Sequence record: NC_019407.1
Length of the DNA stretch: 64,000 nt
Direction: 5' to 3' (one strand)
Shown here: in pieces, positions 2,713-46,655 of the stretch
How the letters are laid out: each line of letters begins with the position of its first letter
Position numbering within the stretch: the first letter of the stretch is position 1
The notes under the pieces: model-generated
What the model was told of the DNA's origin: nothing
Database searches by the model: none
What the model saw: only the letters and a program-made list of their open reading frames with translations
Program-made: the position numbers and the translations under genes

Positions 2713-3137
2713 TGGCAGACGTCCTTGGCGTCGCGCGCGGTCACGGGCGACATGTAGGTGTCGGGGTCCCAGGCGCCGGGCGTGCTGCCGCCATAGACAT
2801 AGTCGCCCGGCGCGGGCGGCGTCATCGACCCGCCGTTGCTGGCGACCTTGCCCGGATTGGCGTAGGCCGAGAGCCACAGGCGCCCGTCGCTGCCGCGCAG
2901 GACGAATTGGCCGTTCTGGCGGCAGACGCGAGCGATGGTCATGCGCCATGCGTAGTTGAGCTTGGCCTTCTTGGCGGCCTCGTCCCGCAACCACTGCTCA
3001 TGCCCCAGACGCGCCCAGCGAGCCTTCTTGGCCACGAGGTCCTTGTGCTCCTGCGACCAGAGGGGGTGGTTGTACTCGTCGCACGCCGAGAGGCTGATCC
3101 CGGCGACGACGAGCAGGAGGAGAGCGCCGCGCCGCAT
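2709..3137 (-). CDS. Putative lipoprotein, 142 aa
   Basis: MRRGALLLLVVAGISLSAC signal peptide with lipobox LSAC; start coupled to the NAMPT stop. Confidence 0.7.
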   Translation of the reverse strand: MRRGALLLLVVAGISLSACDEYNHPLWSQEHKDLVAKKARWARLGHEQWLRDEAAKKAKLNYAWRMTIARVCRQNGQFVLRGSDGRLWLSAYANPGKVASNGGSMTPPAPGDYVYGGSTPGAWDPDTYMSPVTARDAKDVCQ

Positions 3138-4567
3138 CAGGCGATCTCGTAGCCGGCCGCGACCCGCTCGCGGATTTGGTCCAGGGTCGCCGGCTCCAGC
3201 ACCTTGCCGGTGTTGAAGACCTCGTCCAGCAGGTCGTGCTCGACGACGTCGCCCTCGTGGACCGTGATGGTCTCGAAGCGGCCGTCCTCGGTCGTCACCA
3301 GGGCCAGCTTGCCCTTCTTGGAGACCTTGCCCGGATCGGTGATCGGGTCCTTGTAGATTTCGACCCACTCGCCGTTGATCTCCTGGGCCGAGGACTTCAT
3401 CGCCCACTTGTTGGTGTCGCGGTCCAGGTCGCCCGTCGCCAGACCGCCGCCGGCGGCCGTGATGATGCTGTCGGGCGCGACGCCGATGTTGCGGGCCAGG
3501 ATGAACGGGTCCATGTGGGTGTTCTCGTTCATGCCGTCGCCCTGGAGGACCTTGGCGCCCAGGTTCAGCACGTCCAGGCCGTGGCTGTTCTTCTGGGTCC
3601 CGAAGCCGGCGGCCAGGGTCTGGACGACCGGCGGGATGACCTTGAAGAGGTCGCCCGAGTCCGGGCGGCAGACCGGGGTCAGGTTCTTGTTGGCGATCAG
3701 TTCCTTGCGCTCGGTCAGCTTGCCGGCGAAGCGGAAGATGTCCCAGGTGTCGCCGACCAGCGAGACGATCGAGCCGGGAGGCGCCTTGTTCAGGCAGTGG
3801 TCGATATAGTCGTCGTCGTTGTCGCGCCCGAACGCGCACGAGATCGAGTGCTCCGAGGCCAGGACCGAATAGCCCGACATCTCGCTGAAGTAGTTGATAT
3901 TCGCCGCCCGCACGCCGGGGACGTTGTCCGAGCCCTGGAAGTGGAAGAGGTGGGCGATGCCGGCCAAGACCGAGTGGTCATAGCCCATGGTCCCGCGCGA
4001 GGAGAAGTCGAGGAAGGCGAACGGCGACATCGGGGTGTCGCTGTTGGCTTCCCAGAAGCTCTTGATCCGCGTGGCGATGCCGTTGACGCGCGCGGCGATC
4101 GTCGAGGCCGTCCAGACGTCGCGCAGGATCATGGTCTCGAAGTAGGAGGTCAGCCAGGGCAGGCGCGGGTCGAGGTTCTCGACCGAGATCAGCGCGTTGC
4201 GGATCGGGATCATCACGCCCTCGGGCGCGGCCTTGATCCGCAGCGGGAGATAGCCGCCGTACTCGTTCAGGATGATCTCCCAGCCGTCGCGGTTGAACGG
4301 CAGGCCGTGGGCCGGCACGAACGCGGCCATCTCCTCGACGTCGGCGCGGGTGACCGGCTTGCCGAGCTTCTGGAAGAGCAGGCGCTGGAACGCCGCCAGC
4401 ATCACCTTGGGATAGCGCCCGCCCCGGCTCTCGATGTAGCTGTAGACGGTGGTGCAGCCGTCGCGATAGAGCACCCAGTGCCCCAGCTTGTAGCTGTCGG
4501 TGTCGGCGATCAGGTTATAGGTCTCGACGGGCGGCGTGCCGTCCCAGTTGGCGAGGTCAAAGGCCAT
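3137..4567 (-). CDS. nadV: Nicotinamide phosphoribosyltransferase (NAMPT/NadV)
   Basis: DTDSYKLGH, YIESRGG, DFSSRG, ASEHS, SLVGDTWD, RPDSGD, QGDG, KVSKKG motifs; 476 aa. Confidence 0.93.
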   Translation of the reverse strand: MAFDLANWDGTPPVETYNLIADTDSYKLGHWVLYRDGCTTVYSYIESRGGRYPKVMLAAFQRLLFQKLGKPVTRADVEEMAAFVPAHGLPFNRDGWEIILNEYGGYLPLRIKAAPEGVMIPIRNALISVENLDPRLPWLTSYFETMILRDVWTASTIAARVNGIATRIKSFWEANSDTPMSPFAFLDFSSRGTMGYDHSVLAGIAHLFHFQGSDNVPGVRAANINYFSEMSGYSVLASEHSISCAFGRDNDDDYIDHCLNKAPPGSIVSLVGDTWDIFRFAGKLTERKELIANKNLTPVCRPDSGDLFKVIPPVVQTLAAGFGTQKNSHGLDVLNLGAKVLQGDGMNENTHMDPFILARNIGVAPDSIITAAGGGLATGDLDRDTNKWAMKSSAQEINGEWVEIYKDPITDPGKVSKKGKLALVTTEDGRFETITVHEGDVVEHDLLDEVFNTGKVLEPATLDQIRERVAAGYEIA

Positions 4568-4581
4568 GATGAGGTCCCCCT

Positions 4582-5823
4582 TTAAGCGTTGAGGCTGAGC
4601 ATGCGGTCCACGATGAAGGCGTGGTCCTCGAAGGTGTCGCCAGGGTCGATCTCCGAGATCGGGTCCCAGTCGGCGGCGGCGGCGTCGTCATGGCCCTGCA
4701 CGTGCGGCAGACCCAGGCCCAGCGGCGGGGGCGGCAGGACGAAGTGGTAGGCCGTGGAGATGATGTGGGCGCGGCGCGAGCGGTGCGGGTCGTCGAACAC
4801 CTGCGGATCGCCGATCTGATAGCGGCGCAGCAGGTGCATCGCCTTCAGTACGCAGTCGGGCGCCGGCGGGGCGGCGGACTTGGTCTTCTCGGCCGCCTTG
4901 CACGCTTCCAGCCACGCGCGGTACTCCGGCAGATGGGCGGGCGGGATGAACAGCGCCGTCTCCTCGATCACCTCGCGCAGGCAGTTGTCCATCAGCGAGC
5001 GACCGGCGTTGACGAAACCGCCCGGCAGGGCTTTCATCCCAAAGCCCTCGGGGCCGCCGCGCCGGATGCGCAGGATGTGACCGGCGCACTCGACGACCGC
5101 GTCCACCGCCAGGAAGGGGCCAGCGCCCCAGCGTTCGCGATAGGCGTCCTCGGCCTTCTTCTGCGACATCAGATAGGCGTATTCCGGGCGGTCCCGGAAC
5201 CGTTCCAGGAAATCGATCGTGCTCGGGTAGAGGAGATCGGTCCAGGCGTAGCCGTTGTCGCTCCACGAGGTGTCGCGGAAGTTGACGGCGCCGGCGAAAT
5301 AGGCCTTGCGCAGGGCGGTGGCGTTGACCCCGTTGTCCTCGACCGGGGTGTAGGGCCATTGCGGGAACCACGTCAGATATTCGCTGGTGGCGTCGCGGAT
5401 GTTGCCGATCAGGGTGACGCGCGGACGCAGGACCTTGGAGGCGTTCTTGACGTGCTGCTGGACCTGGGCGATCCACTCGTTCTTCCCGTAGGGGCCGGTG
5501 TCATTGAGCGCGATCACCTCGGTGCGGCTCAGGAGGTCGAGCACGAGGGCGGCGTGATCGTCCACTCGGCTCTCGACGGTCTCGGCCTCGCGGCCGGCGT
5601 CGGCCTCTTCCTGGGCCAGATCGCTGAGCCCGTTCAGGATCATCTCCTGGCGCTCGCGGAAGGTGAAGGGGTTGCGGGTGTCGCGGGCGAGATTGGCCGA
5701 ACCGACGAACCACAGGACCTTGCGGGCCTTGCGGCGCGCGGCCTGGAAGAGGCGGAAATGACCCATCCTGGTCACCAACTGCCCCCGCGTGATCAGCACC
5801 GCGATGTCGTATTCGAAGTCCAC
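4582..5823 (-). CDS. nadM: Bifunctional NMN adenylyltransferase / Nudix hydrolase (NadM-Nudix type)
   Basis: xMGH motif, GSAN...RNPFTFRERQEMI, NATALR, Nudix-like LPGGFV...REVIEET, PHRSRRAHII; adjacent to NAMPT. Confidence 0.88.
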   Translation of the reverse strand: MDFEYDIAVLITRGQLVTRMGHFRLFQAARRKARKVLWFVGSANLARDTRNPFTFRERQEMILNGLSDLAQEEADAGREAETVESRVDDHAALVLDLLSRTEVIALNDTGPYGKNEWIAQVQQHVKNASKVLRPRVTLIGNIRDATSEYLTWFPQWPYTPVEDNGVNATALRKAYFAGAVNFRDTSWSDNGYAWTDLLYPSTIDFLERFRDRPEYAYLMSQKKAEDAYRERWGAGPFLAVDAVVECAGHILRIRRGGPEGFGMKALPGGFVNAGRSLMDNCLREVIEETALFIPPAHLPEYRAWLEACKAAEKTKSAAPPAPDCVLKAMHLLRRYQIGDPQVFDDPHRSRRAHIISTAYHFVLPPPPLGLGLPHVQGHDDAAAADWDPISEIDPGDTFEDHAFIVDRMLSLNA

Positions 5824-7632: not shown

Positions 7633-8231
7633 GCGGTCTCCTGCTGGAGGTTAGCCGGCGCCGGGATGGCGTCGGAAAGGGCTTGCTCGACCAGGACCAG
7701 GATGTCCATGACGAGCTTGGGATTGAGGTCGGGCTCGGTGAGCGCGGCGGCCAGGGCGTTGATCCGGAACCACGTCGGGTCGGCGTGCGGGATCAGATTG
7801 AGATTGTGCAGGTGCAGCAGCGTCGAGCCGTGGGAGGCGGTCCGCTCCGAAAGCTCGCGCAGCACGCGGGCGCCGGCGAGTTGGTCGGCCAGGACCTTGA
7901 TCACGCTGCCCGAGGGAGCCAGGAGCAGGCGCATCCAGTCGCCGTTCGGATCGTCGGCTTGGCGCAGGTCCGGATGGTCCAGCGTCTTGCCCCAGATCAC
8001 CTCGTGCGCCTTGGCGGCCAGCGAGCGGCGGCGGCGGGCGAGGTCTTCGGCGTCCTTGGCGGCGCGCAGGCTGGAAAGCGTCGTGGCGATCAACACCGAG
8101 GGAAAGAGCGCGACGACGAAGAACGCGGCGCGCTCAAGCGGCGAGGCGTGCGAAGCCACGATATTCATGACCGTGCCGATCAGCACCGTCGGATAGATCA
8201 AGCCGCCGTGGCGCTGGATGAACGAGATCAT
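7629..8231 (-). CDS. Membrane protein, 200 aa
   Basis: Two N-terminal hydrophobic segments; first gene after the promoter at 8287. Confidence 0.75.
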   Translation of the reverse strand: MISFIQRHGGLIYPTVLIGTVMNIVASHASPLERAAFFVVALFPSVLIATTLSSLRAAKDAEDLARRRRSLAAKAHEVIWGKTLDHPDLRQADDPNGDWMRLLLAPSGSVIKVLADQLAGARVLRELSERTASHGSTLLHLHNLNLIPHADPTWFRINALAAALTEPDLNPKLVMDILVLVEQALSDAIPAPANLQQETA

Positions 8232-8306
8232 GAAAAGGGCCTCCGGCGTTGTCGTCGGAGGCCCTTCTAGCGAGTCGGTGTCAGGCTGTCAACACATGTC
8301 AGCCAG
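8229..8306 (-). promoter_or_regulatory. Conserved promoter plus terminator-like leader hairpin
   Basis: CTGGC-N6-GTGTTGACA-N17-TAGAAG-GGCCTCCG-ACGACAACGC-CGGAGGCCC-TTTTC-ATG. Confidence 0.88.
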
Positions 8307-42326: not shown

Positions 42327-43045
42327 ACGACGAGATCAAGAGAACCCACGAGGCCTACGGGATCATCGGCTATAGCCACACCCAGGGCGACACCGATCTG
42401 GTCGGCGTCGACTACGCCCAGGGCCACTATGTGACCCTGACGATCAAGACGGCCATCGCCTATGAGGGTGAGACCCATGACCGCTTCCACGGCGACAAGT
42501 ACATCTGCAAGGTGGCGATGAGCGAGGTCCAGTGGGCCGCCTTCATCGCCAATCCGAACCGGGGTGACGGCGTGCCCTGCACCTTGCAGTTCTATCGCGA
42601 TCCGCTGACCGGCGAGACCAAGCACCCGAAGTATCATCGCGAGCAAATGACCCGCGTCGAGCGCACCCGCGAGGCCGTCACCGCCCGCGCCATGGCCCTG
42701 TCGACCAAGGTCAAGGAGGCCCAGGCCGAGCTTCAGCGGCTGATGGACGGCGGCCCGATCAAGAAGGGTGATCTGAAGACGCTCAAGGACCTGCTCTACT
42801 TCGCCAACCAGGACATGGAGTCGAACCTCGGCTACTTCGTCGAGCGGGTGGAGGAGACCATCGACAAGGCGGTGGTCGACGCCAAGGCCCAGGTCGACGC
42901 CCATCTCGACTTCGTGGTTCGCGAACTAGGGGTGCGGGCTCTGGGCGCGCGGCTCCAGGAGGCCATCGACGCGGGCCATGATCCCGGCTCCGTGGGGCAG
43001 GCCCTGATCGGGCTCGTGGCGCCGCCGGAGGCAGACCCGACGTGA
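42323..43045 (+). CDS. Hypothetical protein, 240 aa (MNDEIKRTHEAYG...)
   Basis: ATGA overlap; C-terminal coiled coil. Confidence 0.78.
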   Translation: MNDEIKRTHEAYGIIGYSHTQGDTDLVGVDYAQGHYVTLTIKTAIAYEGETHDRFHGDKYICKVAMSEVQWAAFIANPNRGDGVPCTLQFYRDPLTGETKHPKYHREQMTRVERTREAVTARAMALSTKVKEAQAELQRLMDGGPIKKGDLKTLKDLLYFANQDMESNLGYFVERVEETIDKAVVDAKAQVDAHLDFVVRELGVRALGARLQEAIDAGHDPGSVGQALIGLVAPPEADPT

Positions 43046-43287
43046 GCCGCCGGTTCCTCAACCGCTGGGCCGAGGCGGTCGACGGCTCGCCCCAGTCCAA
43101 GCCCTTCCGGACCAAGGGCCTGTCGTTCGCCCATGCCCGCAGGACGGCGCGGGAGACCCAAGGGGTCGTCGCCGTCGAACACCAAGAACCCGTCAGCGAC
43201 GCCTCGCCCAACTGGGCGGTGATCGAGCGCTGGGAATTCTATCCCGACGGCCGTGAGCGCCGCACCCTCAAGCTGGAGACCGTCTGA
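43042..43287 (+). CDS. Hypothetical protein, 81 aa
   Basis: GTGA overlap. Confidence 0.6.
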   Translation: MSRRFLNRWAEAVDGSPQSKPFRTKGLSFAHARRTARETQGVVAVEHQEPVSDASPNWAVIERWEFYPDGRERRTLKLETV

Positions 43288-43288
43288 C

Positions 43289-43786
43289 ATGACCCGCAGC
43301 ACCGCCGACATCATCGCCCGCATCAAGGTCCTGGAGGAGGACCCCACCGACTTCTTCGGCTTCCAGGCCAATGATCTGGTCTGCTACCTGCCGTTCGAGG
43401 CCGCCAAGCCTTGGCTGAATGAAAACGCAACGCCCGAGGTCTGGACGCCCAACGTCAACACTCCCGAGGCGATCAAGCAGGTCATCCTCGACTACATGGA
43501 GTTCGCCTGGGACAAGGCCAACAACCGGCGCGGCCTGTCGGCCGGGCGCTCGCTCGACCACATGAAGGCGTGGCTCTGGATGCTGGACGAGGACGCGGCC
43601 TGGGTCGCGGCCCTGAAGCTCTCCGACTACACCCACTACGGCAAGCCGCAGCTTCGCGCGATCTGCAAGCGTTTCGGCTGGGACTGGACCGCCTGGGACG
43701 ACGGCGCCTGGGGCAACAGCGAACACCGCGAAATCGACGTCAGGCCCGAGGACGTCCCCGAGGTCGGGATCGTCGAGCCGGCCTGA
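43289..43786 (+). CDS. Hypothetical protein, 165 aa (MTRSTADI...)
   Basis: Codon bias; FAWDKANNRRGLSAGRSLDH. Confidence 0.75.
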   Translation: MTRSTADIIARIKVLEEDPTDFFGFQANDLVCYLPFEAAKPWLNENATPEVWTPNVNTPEAIKQVILDYMEFAWDKANNRRGLSAGRSLDHMKAWLWMLDEDAAWVAALKLSDYTHYGKPQLRAICKRFGWDWTAWDDGAWGNSEHREIDVRPEDVPEVGIVEPA

Positions 43787-43793
43787 ATCTTTC

Positions 43794-43866
43794 CTGGCGC
43801 GAAAGTGTTGACAAGGTTCTGGGAACTCCTCTATACCCACGCTCGACGACAACGAGAGGAGTTCCC
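43794..43866 (+). promoter_or_regulatory. Conserved promoter; the spacer pairs perfectly (11 bp) with the SD
   Basis: CTGGC-N6-GTGTTGACA-N18-TATACC-N8-ACGACAA; GGGAACTCCTC (43821-43831) / GAGGAGTTCCC (43856-43866). Confidence 0.88.
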
Positions 43867-45627
43867 ATGGCCGAGACCATGTCCCTGAGTTTCCGGATCG
43901 AAGGCGCCGCCCTGGTGGAACGGGCGCGCGATCGCGTCATCGAAGGTAACTGGGAGCACGGCCTGCGCATCCTGGTCGAGGGCCTGCACGGCATGTCCTA
44001 CGAACTCGCGATCGACATCCTGCTCGGCAAGCACACCCTGGGCGGCTGGTCCTCGGACCCCGAGGGCGTCTATCTCACCGACCAGGACCCGGAGGACGAG
44101 ACTTTCAAGCGCTACAAGAAAACCCTCGACTACCAGTTCGCCGGCGTCTTCAAGCTGGACGACGGCCGGATCATGCGCCCCTACGCGGTGGTCGACAGCT
44201 TCTCCAAGATCGACTTCGACTCTAGGGTCCGCTTCCTGCGGCTGGCCCAGGGCTCGGACCCGGTGTTCTCGCGCCCCAAGCGCTATCACGACCCCCGCGC
44301 CGAGATCAACGGCGAGGAGATCGACTGGGCCTATCGCGCCCTGCACTACGCCGACGAGCCGACCCAGGACATCGTCCGTCTGGTCCGCATGGAGGGCTTC
44401 CACCCCACGATCCGGGCGGCGGTCCTGTTCAAGGAAGTCCGCGACTACCCCAAGCTCCTGCTCCCGAAGGTCGAGACCGACGCCCAGAAGGCCGTCGACG
44501 TGGCGATCAAGGCCCAGCGTGGTCTCTCCAAGCGCGGGCACGTCTACGAGTATGGCGCTGGTCAGGACTTCGACAAGGAGCACTACAAGACCACCATGGG
44601 GATCGATCAGGTCCCCACCGCCTGGACCGTGCGCAATCCGAAGTACGTCGATCCCGACGCCAAGTTCGTGAAGGACACCCTGGCCGAGATCGACGGCGAC
44701 AAGCGCCCGGCGCCGGCCGGTGATTACGCCGGCGCCATGAACCGGATGATCAAGGACGAGATGGACGGCGGCATGGACATCAGCGCGGCCGTCGCCATGA
44801 CCCAGGCCAAGATGGCGCTGCTGGGCGGCATGGCCGAGGACCCCGAGCAGCGCCTGCGGGCGATCAACGACGCCTACGCCGCCAAGTACGAGAAGGCCGA
44901 GGGCCGCAGCGTCGAGGAGTACCGCAAGGCCATCATCGCCCAGGCCGGCGATGATTTCTTCGATCTCGCGTACACGGATGTGAACGGCAAGGACGTCGTC
45001 CTGAAGGTCCCGACCGCGCCGTTCGAGCAGTGGGCGCTCTGGCGCACGGCCGGCTCCCACCTCGCCAAGCCCTGGAAGCGGGTGACCTACACCGGCTTCA
45101 AGACGTTCGGCGATGACCCCTATCACACCGACTGGGTGCTGGGCGCCGGGCTCAATCCCGAGGATTGGCCGATCATCGAGGCCGACAACCCGCCGCTCCA
45201 CAAGGCCGCCTGGGACAAGCGCTTCCGGCTGGCCGAGGAGAAGCTGGGCGGCAACATGCGCGTCCTGCTCGGCAAGGGCTTCGTGACCGGCAAGATCGTG
45301 ATGCTCAAGCCGGGCGAGGCCCTGTCACCGGGCGAGATCGGTGTGATCCGCAACGCCGGCCCCGACTACGTTCAGGCCGCCCAGAGCGCGATCGAGCACA
45401 ACACCGCCTTGATCTGCGAGAACGGCGGCAGCGTCGCCCACCTCGTGGTCGAGTACCTGGACAAGCCCCTGCGCCTGACCCGGATCGAGAACGCGCGCAA
45501 GATTTTCAAGGACGGCATGACCGTCTACCTCGACTTTGACAAGTCGACGCGAGAGATCGCCAAGGGCGGCCTGGGGCCGAGCCCTGCCGATCTTGGCCTC
45601 GACACGGAATGGGAGATTTTCGAATGA
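43867..45627 (+). CDS. 586-aa protein with a C-terminal PEP-utilising-enzyme mobile (phospho-His swivel) domain
   Basis: GEIGVIRNAGPDY...ALICENGGSVAHL.......ENARKIFKDGMTVYLD matches the GGxxSH..I...G..V.VD pattern. Confidence 0.72.
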   Translation: MAETMSLSFRIEGAALVERARDRVIEGNWEHGLRILVEGLHGMSYELAIDILLGKHTLGGWSSDPEGVYLTDQDPEDETFKRYKKTLDYQFAGVFKLDDGRIMRPYAVVDSFSKIDFDSRVRFLRLAQGSDPVFSRPKRYHDPRAEINGEEIDWAYRALHYADEPTQDIVRLVRMEGFHPTIRAAVLFKEVRDYPKLLLPKVETDAQKAVDVAIKAQRGLSKRGHVYEYGAGQDFDKEHYKTTMGIDQVPTAWTVRNPKYVDPDAKFVKDTLAEIDGDKRPAPAGDYAGAMNRMIKDEMDGGMDISAAVAMTQAKMALLGGMAEDPEQRLRAINDAYAAKYEKAEGRSVEEYRKAIIAQAGDDFFDLAYTDVNGKDVVLKVPTAPFEQWALWRTAGSHLAKPWKRVTYTGFKTFGDDPYHTDWVLGAGLNPEDWPIIEADNPPLHKAAWDKRFRLAEEKLGGNMRVLLGKGFVTGKIVMLKPGEALSPGEIGVIRNAGPDYVQAAQSAIEHNTALICENGGSVAHLVVEYLDKPLRLTRIENARKIFKDGMTVYLDFDKSTREIAKGGLGPSPADLGLDTEWEIFE

Positions 45628-45920
45628 GCGAGAAGTGGCAACCGGTGGAGGAAGCCGCCAATAACCTCTCCGGCTGGAACGTGCGCTCGGCCCAGATGGC
45701 GGTCGCCGGCGGGACCCTCTATCGGACGATCGTCTCGCGCGACAGCCAGGGCGCCGCGCCGGCGGTGAGCACCACCTTCGTCCCGGACGCCGCGCCGCAG
45801 TTCACCGTCCAGGTGACCGACGAGGACCTCCGGAGCCTTGCCGAGTGCAAGGACGTCGCCAGGGCGCGCAGCCTGTTCCGGGGCATCCTGAAGGCCCACG
45901 GCCTGGAGATCATCGCCTAG
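45624..45920 (+). CDS. Hypothetical protein, 98 aa; apparent paralog of 38226-38405
   Basis: KWQPVEE...MAVAGGTLYR...TTFVPD. Confidence 0.7.
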   Translation: MSEKWQPVEEAANNLSGWNVRSAQMAVAGGTLYRTIVSRDSQGAAPAVSTTFVPDAAPQFTVQVTDEDLRSLAECKDVARARSLFRGILKAHGLEIIA

Positions 45921-46145
45921 ATGCCGGTCTACGAACTCTCCGTCACCGCGATCCACCGCGACACCGTCACGATCGAGGCCGATAGCGAGGAGGCGGCCCG
46001 CGCCCGCATCCTCGAAGAAGGCTATGCCAATGGGGACGACATAAAGTCGGTTCACCACGATGTCGATCCGGAGATCGAGATCGGCGACGCGCGCGATGTG
46101 ACGGACGAGCAGTGGATCATCAGCACCTCGGACGAGGAGGACTAA
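45921..46145 (+). CDS. Small acidic protein, 74 aa
   Basis: TIEADSEEAAR pattern; abuts neighbours. Confidence 0.7.
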   Translation: MPVYELSVTAIHRDTVTIEADSEEAARARILEEGYANGDDIKSVHHDVDPEIEIGDARDVTDEQWIISTSDEED

Positions 46146-46655
46146 ATGGCCGACTTCAGCCGCGCCCGCCGGTCCATGGAGACCGCCGACCTGATCGAAC
46201 GCCTCAAGGCCCTCTACGACCTGGAGGACGCCCGCGATATCCCAGACGAGGAGACCAAGGCCGCCTTGAAGGAGGCGGTGGTCCATCTTGGGAGCCTGCA
46301 TGCGCAGGTCGAGGCCGAGCGCGCCATGGTCAAGACGGTCATGGACCAGTCCCAGGGCTACAAGACTCTGCTCCTGACGGCGTCTGAGGACCCGGACTTC
46401 AAGCGGGCGGCCTCGCAAATTCGCCTGATGGATACCTATCCCCCGCGTCTGCGGGTGGCTGTCAACACCTTCCAGAGGGCGATGGACGAGGCCGGACATC
46501 TCTCGGGGCCGGAGGGCCGCAAGATCAACGACCTGATCCAGGGCCATCTCCAACATGACCTCGCCGGCGTCATGGGGATGTCGATGAGCTACAATATCCG
46601 CGCCGCCGTCGCCGCGCTTCACGGCCTTCCGACCCCGGAGTCCAAGACCGAATGA
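46146..46655 (+). CDS. Hypothetical protein, 169 aa
   Basis: GAGGAGG SD. Confidence 0.72.
   Translation: MADFSRARRSMETADLIERLKALYDLEDARDIPDEETKAALKEAVVHLGSLHAQVEAERAMVKTVMDQSQGYKTLLLTASEDPDFKRAASQIRLMDTYPPRLRVAVNTFQRAMDEAGHLSGPEGRKINDLIQGHLQHDLAGVMGMSMSYNIRAAVAALHGLPTPESKTE

Follow-up and report, generated by a model that had tools for sequence, protein, structure and literature searches.

The gene CcrMagneto_gp245 (hereafter gp245), located at positions 43867–45627 (plus strand) of a 64,000-nucleotide stretch of Caulobacter virus Magneto, probably encodes a new kind of phosphotransferase. Its 586-amino-acid (aa) product, annotated as a hypothetical protein, carries at its C-terminus a bona fide phosphohistidine swivel domain, also called the mobile domain of phosphoenolpyruvate (PEP)-utilising enzymes, with an invariant His525 that would carry the phosphoryl group. 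We judge the chances to be about even that gp245 is a catalytically competent phosphohistidine-carrier enzyme of new architecture, whose donor, acceptor and phosphorylation at His525 we infer. The whole stretch analysed, referred to below as the window (record NC_019407.1), corresponds to bases 124001–188000 of JX100812.1, with which its positions 43000–46500 were 100% identical in a megablast search.

The open reading frame singled out in a first-pass annotation of this DNA, which was made from the letters alone, is the annotated coding sequence CcrMagneto_gp245 itself, with a stop-free translation of 586 aa followed by a stop codon. A longer frame beginning at a GTG at 43570 was discarded in favour of the ATG at 43867, because the relatives align from Met1 and a strong Shine-Dalgarno (SD) sequence (GAGAGGAG) lies ahead of this ATG. 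The gene is present in one copy per Magneto genome, and orthologues with 64–100% protein identity are found in all phiCbK-like phages (e.g. CbK_gp239, 99.5%).

The swivel domain spans residues 462 to 566 (45250–45564, plus strand). When the whole gp245 sequence was compared with Pfam, no match to PF00391 was obtained, and the C-terminal 146 aa gave an E value of 0.099 and 12.7 bits, under the cut-off of 23.1. Distant relatives from Vibrio phages lie near the PF00391 cut-off (E values of 1e-4 and 7e-4), and other relatives exceed it with 27–40 bits (e.g. P0037, 39.8 bits). Furthermore, a profile built from 134 relatives matched the swivel domains of solved structures with high significance, namely those of PEP synthase (2ols, E 6.4e-13), Listeria rifampin phosphotransferase (RPH; 5fbs/5hv1, E 1.3e-11) and Geobacillus pyruvate kinase (2e28, E 2e-11), and the histidines of the GGxxxH motif were in register between the profile and the matched structures. 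Thus, the C-terminal assignment proposed in the first-pass annotation, some 100 residues fitting the PEP-utiliser mobile domain, was borne out by the family profile and by fold comparison, with gp245 alone remaining below the Pfam cut-off.

To the fold comparison we contributed an AlphaFold model of gp245 with a mean pLDDT (predicted local distance difference test) of 83. Residues 462–566 of this model showed the swivelling beta/beta/alpha fold by which PF00391 is defined, and RPH ranked first in the Foldseek search. The best fold match was RPH 5hv1 (score 12.5, root-mean-square deviation 2.2 over 105 aa, 25% identity), followed by pyruvate kinase 2e28 (11.5, 28% identity), enzyme I 2wqd (11.5, 11% identity), EI-Ntr 5t12 (10.2, 6% identity) and PPDK 1vbg (9.0, 18% identity). 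The Geobacillus and Staphylococcus pyruvate kinases (2e28, 3t05) possess a similar extra C-terminal PEP-utiliser domain, whereas the remainder of gp245 is not pyruvate kinase.

The predicted phosphoryl-carrying residue, His525, is encoded by codon 45439–45441 (plus strand) within the GGSVAH motif and stands in register with the catalytic histidine of PEP synthase and RPH. Both His525 and G520 are invariant in the family (134 of 134 sequences). The histidine that the first-pass annotation had pointed to in ENGGSVAH is this same residue, and the profile match, the structural match and the conservation among homologues on which it had made its proposal depend were all found.

The region preceding the swivel domain has a different character. 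Three parts can be distinguished: module A, an alpha/beta domain without recognised fold (residues 1–235; 43867–44571, plus strand); a variable helical linker predicted with low confidence (residues 236–345; 44572–44901, plus strand; pLDDT 33–75), most of which is missing in the shorter relatives of 440–490 aa; and module B, composed of a beta-hairpin and helices (residues 346–460; 44902–45246, plus strand; pLDDT 85–98), whose helix 443–460 runs into the swivel. In module A, residues R21, D116 and Y161 are conserved in 127–129 of the 134 sequences. Module B contains a conserved loop, K412-x3-D416-D417-P-Y-H420-T-D422 (45100–45132, plus strand), which represents a candidate second active site. 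H420 and D422 are present in all 134 sequences, D416 in 133 and K412 in 131, and D417 in 104, with N, S or C in the remainder.

Residues 1–460 gave no sequence match in Pfam, NCBIfam or the Protein Data Bank (PDB), either as a single sequence or as a profile, and neither an ATP-grasp nor a TIM barrel was detected. A separate model of this region (pLDDT 73, with well-predicted cores) yielded no Foldseek match in the PDB, the best E value being 1.9, and its fold matches in BFVD were members of its own family. When regions 346–460 and 1–235 were used separately in sequence searches, the same family alone was recovered, and direct comparison of gp245 with Pfam, NCBIfam, PADLOC and the PDB produced nothing beyond weak swivel matches. 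RPH (5hv1, 5fbs) and PEP synthase (2ols) possess an ATP-grasp, a rifampin (RIF)-binding domain or a PEP/pyruvate TIM barrel, whereas gp245 lacks these, and its residues 1–460 match nothing in the RPH and PEP synthase chains. These sequence, profile and structural searches agree with the first-pass annotation, which had recognised no ATP-grasp or TIM barrel in the N-terminus and had suggested modelling it and searching the model by fold. A lead from the ESM Atlas, PF27448 'Rph_4th' (0.89, taken as a lead only), received no backing from the RPH fold search.

To delimit the family, an exhaustive phmmer search was conducted, which recovered at least 726 cluster representatives at 50% identity (E up to 1e-3), of which 113 reached E values of 1e-30 or lower; most of the 150 family matches listed are 430–600 aa long. 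Members from cultured phages infect Caulobacter (the phiCbK-like phages and Seuss), Brevundimonas (Bajun) and Vibrio (1.232.O, D93-like, VAP7/VP-1), and the family is also present in many viral and metagenomic contigs of up to 578 kb. A scan of species genomes found one contig of a metagenome-assembled genome, with a single narrow peptide pattern that says little about distribution.

All 163 relatives retrieved contain module B and the swivel, and 156 of them show the arrangement A-B-swivel. Four consist of B-swivel only, at least one of them being truncated where its contig stops; among them, P0157 is a complete 235-aa B-swivel gene located downstream of an unrelated open reading frame. In the remaining three (P0111, P0155 and P0163), B-swivel is followed by another region of approximately 230–275 residues in place of module A. 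Of these, P0111 (L055:5001–6407) and P0155 (L056:4271–5773) are complete genes within their contigs and share 44% mutual identity. The identity of module B in proteins lacking module A was supported by hhalign with a probability of 99.7%. No module B without a swivel was seen among the retrieved proteins, and in all of them B directly precedes the swivel. Since B was never seen without the swivel and B-swivel is retained in proteins that lack A, module B plus the swivel constitutes, judging from these sequence comparisons, the conserved functional unit, with module A as a common but dispensable addition.

The genomic neighbourhood of the family was then considered. All-against-all clustering of the neighbours at about 25 loci revealed no gene that recurs across lineages; the few neighbours identified through Pfam are lineage-specific genes of replication or nucleotide metabolism, namely a UvrD-like helicase, a dCMP deaminase, AAA ATPases and a MoxR/VWA pair. 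PF01326, the PPDK-type ATP-grasp (PPDK_N), was not found in the Magneto genome and was missing from 14 of the 15 other virus records that carry a family member, eight of which are estimated to be at least 90% complete. The sole PF01326 match among the 16 virus records is located about 165 kb from the family gene. Because there is neither a conserved neighbour nor a PPDK_N match in Magneto or in 14 of the 15 other records, we consider the unit to be a single gene. The record that holds both the family gene and PPDK_N (L051/L052) is a 358-kb phage with terminal repeats, in which the ATP-grasp match (G011:C1:212920–213621, minus strand) contains an in-frame TGA and is split across two frames, which points to a disrupted gene, to a frameshift or to stop-codon recoding.

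In dikinases and in enzyme I, the swivel histidine is loaded with a phosphoryl group at a first site and unloaded at a second one (PMC4844700, PMC12167813), and it is by analogy with this two-site behaviour that we read gp245 as a phosphotransferase. The swivel (residues 462–566) would bear on His525 a phosphoryl group, or for short periods a pyrophosphoryl group, and would move on the helical tether formed by residues 443–460 between sites of the phage-specific N-terminal modules. The obligatory partner site would be module B, with K412, D416, D417, H420 and D422 of its loop acting as a metal/phosphate-binding or phosphoryl-accepting centre; such a catalytic role is a prediction from the conservation of the loop. 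Module A, with R21, D116 and Y161, would probably contribute the other site, where the donor or the target is bound or where regulation takes place, and would be dispensable in a minority sub-family; alternatively, the second site could be supplied by an external partner. Overall, a cellular donor, either a nucleotide or PEP, would give up a phosphoryl group in the infected cell, and a small molecule or a macromolecule would receive it. The invariant residues His525, G520, H420 and D422, together with the near-invariant K412 and D416, argue for chemistry rather than scaffolding, as far as conservation in sequence can be a guide.

Several observations speak for this phosphotransferase reading: the swivel is recognised by both profile and fold, module B is always joined to it, neither a recurrent neighbour nor, in most records, a PPDK_N gene accompanies the family, the orthologues are kept, a conserved promoter-like site and a covarying leader precede the gene (see below), and RNA sequencing libraries containing a close relative of the phage include the stretch. 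Others weigh against it. The inter-domain geometry of the model is uncertain (predicted template-modelling score, pTM, 0.49). In residues 1–460, no fold that binds a nucleotide or PEP could be recognised, so that the donor site is a hypothetical one, and this region was searched as one multi-domain piece, such that a weak single-domain likeness could be missed. With about 220 aa, the unit formed by B and the swivel is possibly too short to function by itself. In addition, two positions flanking His525 deviate in the Magneto protein from the usual pattern. The Arg-Glu pair at His+6/+7, which also occurs in PEP synthase and RPH, is replaced by Leu531-Asp532 (45457–45462) in Magneto, phiCbK and CcrBL10. 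Within the family, Arg is found at His+6 in 97 of 134 sequences and Glu at His+7 in 106 of 134, and CcrRogue retains the Arg. Likewise, the swivel motif T/SxxGGxxxH includes a Thr or Ser at His-8 (PMC12167813), where Magneto has Cys517 and the family has Thr in 55 of 134 sequences. These Leu-Asp and Cys changes are clade-specific drift.

The alternative raised in the first-pass annotation of a new kinase architecture gains support from the bona fide swivel, the invariant histidine, the modules matching no known nucleotide or substrate fold and the size of the family. To our knowledge, every characterised enzyme with a catalytic swivel pairs it with a known donor module, be it an ATP-grasp, a PEP barrel or the phosphotransferase system (PTS). 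A bolder form of the phosphotransferase reading would make gp245 and its at least about 700 relatives a self-contained viral phosphotransferase class, in which a hitherto unseen 110-residue catalytic module (K-x3-D-D-x2-H-x-D) takes the place of the ATP-grasp or PEP barrel; we put this forward tentatively, as possible rather than probable. Within such a class, one possibility would be a relay from His525 to His420 that, in the early phase of infection, passes phosphoryl groups from a host donor to a nucleotide or to a target in the host or in a defence system.

It is also conceivable, but unlikely in our assessment, that gp245 represents one half, the 'H-type' one, of a two-component dikinase whose ATP-grasp partner is an unrecognised phage or host protein, for example the nucleotide-binding domain of the host PPDK or PEP synthase. 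In the H components HpeH, CreH and PpsA, a substrate part is followed by a C-terminal swivel without an ATP-grasp, the same order as in gp245 (PMC12167813). The best sequence and fold matches of the gp245 swivel, to RPH and PEP synthase, would fit this proposal, and a control search found a PPDK_N protein in Caulobacter. However, the H components share homology with the RPH domain that binds RIF (PMC12167813), whereas the N-terminal modules of gp245 (residues 1–460) are unrelated to it, with 5hv1_A included in the searched library. Moreover, the ATP-grasp components HpeI, CreI and PpsB are required for the activity of HpeHI, CreHI and PpsAB (PMC12167813), whereas no gene for a partner of this kind lies near the members of the gp245 family: PF01326 is missing in 15 of the 16 virus records, its single occurrence is far from the family gene, and the neighbouring ATPases, none of them recurrent, are unrelated AAA or UvrD proteins. 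We also know of no precedent for the use in trans of the ATP-grasp domain of a host enzyme.

A role in the host PEP phosphorelay appears more doubtful still. Under this proposal, which develops the idea in the first-pass annotation of a phosphoryl sink, mimic or donor acting on PTS-Ntr signalling, SpoT and (p)ppGpp, His525 would be charged by EI/HPr-type proteins of the PTS or PTS-Ntr, and the phosphoryl group would be drained or redirected, possibly via His420, altering SpoT/(p)ppGpp or carbon signalling. In favour of this proposal, swivel domains can serve purely as relays, as the one in E. coli DhaM does. Enzyme I (2wqd) and EI-Ntr (5t12), however, contain an inserted HPr-binding alpha subdomain and a PEP-binding barrel, with a GAF domain in addition in EI-Ntr, all of which gp245 lacks. 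Its swivel is contiguous over 105 residues, and the alignments to 2wqd (chain residues 5–233) and 5t12 use about 102–109 residues and skip the HPr-binding part; Pfam comparison detected no PF05524, PF02896 or GAF in gp245. The swivel shares 6–14% identity with those of enzyme I and EI-Ntr, versus 25–28% with those of RPH and pyruvate kinase, and enzyme I was not among the matches of the 134-relative profile even at an E value of 10. Furthermore, the family spans phages of unrelated hosts and environments and is not tied to Caulobacter. The PTS-Ntr idea is thus weakened and finds no support here, because gp245 has no HPr-binding insert, its swivel resembles those of dikinases and pyruvate kinase, and its family is not bound to Caulobacter. 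Least probable of all is a non-catalytic swivel, serving for regulation or binding in the manner of the extra C-terminal domain found in Bacillus-type pyruvate kinases, or as a decoy that blocks a host PEP-utilising enzyme, with N-terminal modules of unrelated function, since the absolute conservation of His525 and G520 over 134 sequences and a second, near-invariant charged loop are hard to explain without phosphoryl chemistry.

Upstream of gp245, a σ70-like promoter can be read from the sequence (plus strand), with TTGACA at 43808–43813 and TATACC at 43832–43837 separated by an 18-nucleotide spacer, and would be expected to function as such. A block comprising GTGTTGAC...CTCTAYAC is kept in Karma, phiCbK, CcrBL10 and Rogue. 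A strict scan for the promoter consensus omits the site at 43808–43837, whose -10 element ends in C. An inverted repeat with a 13-bp perfect stem (43820–43832/43855–43867, plus strand) overlaps this region: its left arm coincides with the promoter spacer and the start of the -10 element, and its right arm covers the SD sequence and the A of the ATG codon. The predicted folding energy of the hairpin is -29.2 kcal/mol (z -4.74), and none of 200 shuffled sequences was equally stable. Its stem covaries, with AA/TT replaced by GC/GC in CcrBL10 and Rogue, and its loop is invariant. Among 118 annotated starts, that of gp245 has the most stable fold in which the SD is mostly paired, approximately level with the cassettes at 8231 and 62141; the first-pass description of this hairpin as the tightest SD-occluding one in the window is therefore roughly right as to its rank, but it shares this place with the other two. 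A transcript initiated at the 43808–43837 promoter would lack the left arm, and the SD would then be masked in read-through RNA only. Alternatively, the palindrome (43820–43867) could be a protein-binding site on DNA.

The loop of the hairpin holds the motif CGACGACAACG (43844–43854), which occurs eight times in the window versus 0.1 expected, at 8247, 15171 and 24355 (minus strand) and at 43844, 47699, 56925, 58328 and 62115 (plus strand). It is always on the coding strand of its own gene block and lies 12–16 nucleotides upstream of an annotated start at the five sites compared. Three of the copies, those at 43844, 8247 and 62115, each constitute the loop of a strong hairpin with a stem that varies from site to site. 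The motif CGACGACAACG appears to be an element common to the leaders, or to the promoter-proximal parts, of a single class of transcription units in the phage. The promoter/leader piece at 43794–43856 has a second match about 19 kb away, on the opposite strand, in a contig from RNA sequencing (RNA-seq) of a relative; therefore, the cassette is repeated in the phage genome. Four RNA-seq runs from 2023 hold the stretch at 97% identity, from a close relative, in contigs of 23–45 kb, which indicate presence in RNA libraries and cannot show transcription, transcript ends or timing. In phiCbK, 41% of the genes are early, as is the replication region (PMC10688885). Early expression of gp245, as assumed in the first-pass annotation, is plausible.

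At its 3' end, the gp245 stop codon overlaps the start codon of gp246, which encodes a 98-aa product, within the sequence ATGA (45624–45627), an arrangement that suggests translational coupling. The gp246 gene is kept only within the phiCbK-like phages and is elsewhere absent beside members of the gp245 family. At a distance in the window, gp160 and gp161 are adjacent (3137–5823, minus strand) and annotated as a nicotinate phosphoribosyltransferase and a NUDIX-domain protein, respectively; together they may salvage or reconstitute NAD+, as phages do to counter NAD-depleting defences. Near them are genes for an RtcB-like protein (gp176), an HD/PDEase-like protein (gp167), a peptidyl-tRNA hydrolase (gp163) and an ArdC-like antirestriction protein (gp199).

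A swivel-domain tag on close relatives of gp245 is already known from databases. The family corresponds to phrog_11532 (PHROG 11532, function unknown), to the UniProt entries 'PEP-utilising enzyme mobile domain-containing protein' of phages BL57, CcrBL10 and Bajun, and to the 'PEP-utilizing enzyme' NVP1232O_63 of a Vibrio phage. These labels are automatic and derive from the C-terminal domain alone, and no N-terminal analysis, function or experiment was found with them; a literature search likewise brought up no publication dealing with the family. A 'PPDK' from Vibrio phage J26, described as a full PPDK-like protein of 691 aa (PMC12038007), appears to differ from the gp245 family. What is new in the present analysis is the verification of the swivel and its catalytic histidine, the negative outcome for the known partner domains, the definition of the B plus swivel core with its loop, and the absence of a partner gene.

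In gp245, we thus encounter a member of a large, mostly viral family in which the catalytic histidine of the swivel is kept absolutely and is paired with modules of unrecognised fold, in a single gene without a partner. If active, the family would add a donor or acceptor site of a new type to the chemistry of swivel domains, and would stand for a function shared by highly dissimilar phages, from those of Caulobacter, Brevundimonas and Vibrio to viral contigs of megaphage size. Since phiCbK and Caulobacter constitute a genetically tractable pair, they offer a handle on what this widespread accessory phage enzyme would phosphorylate.

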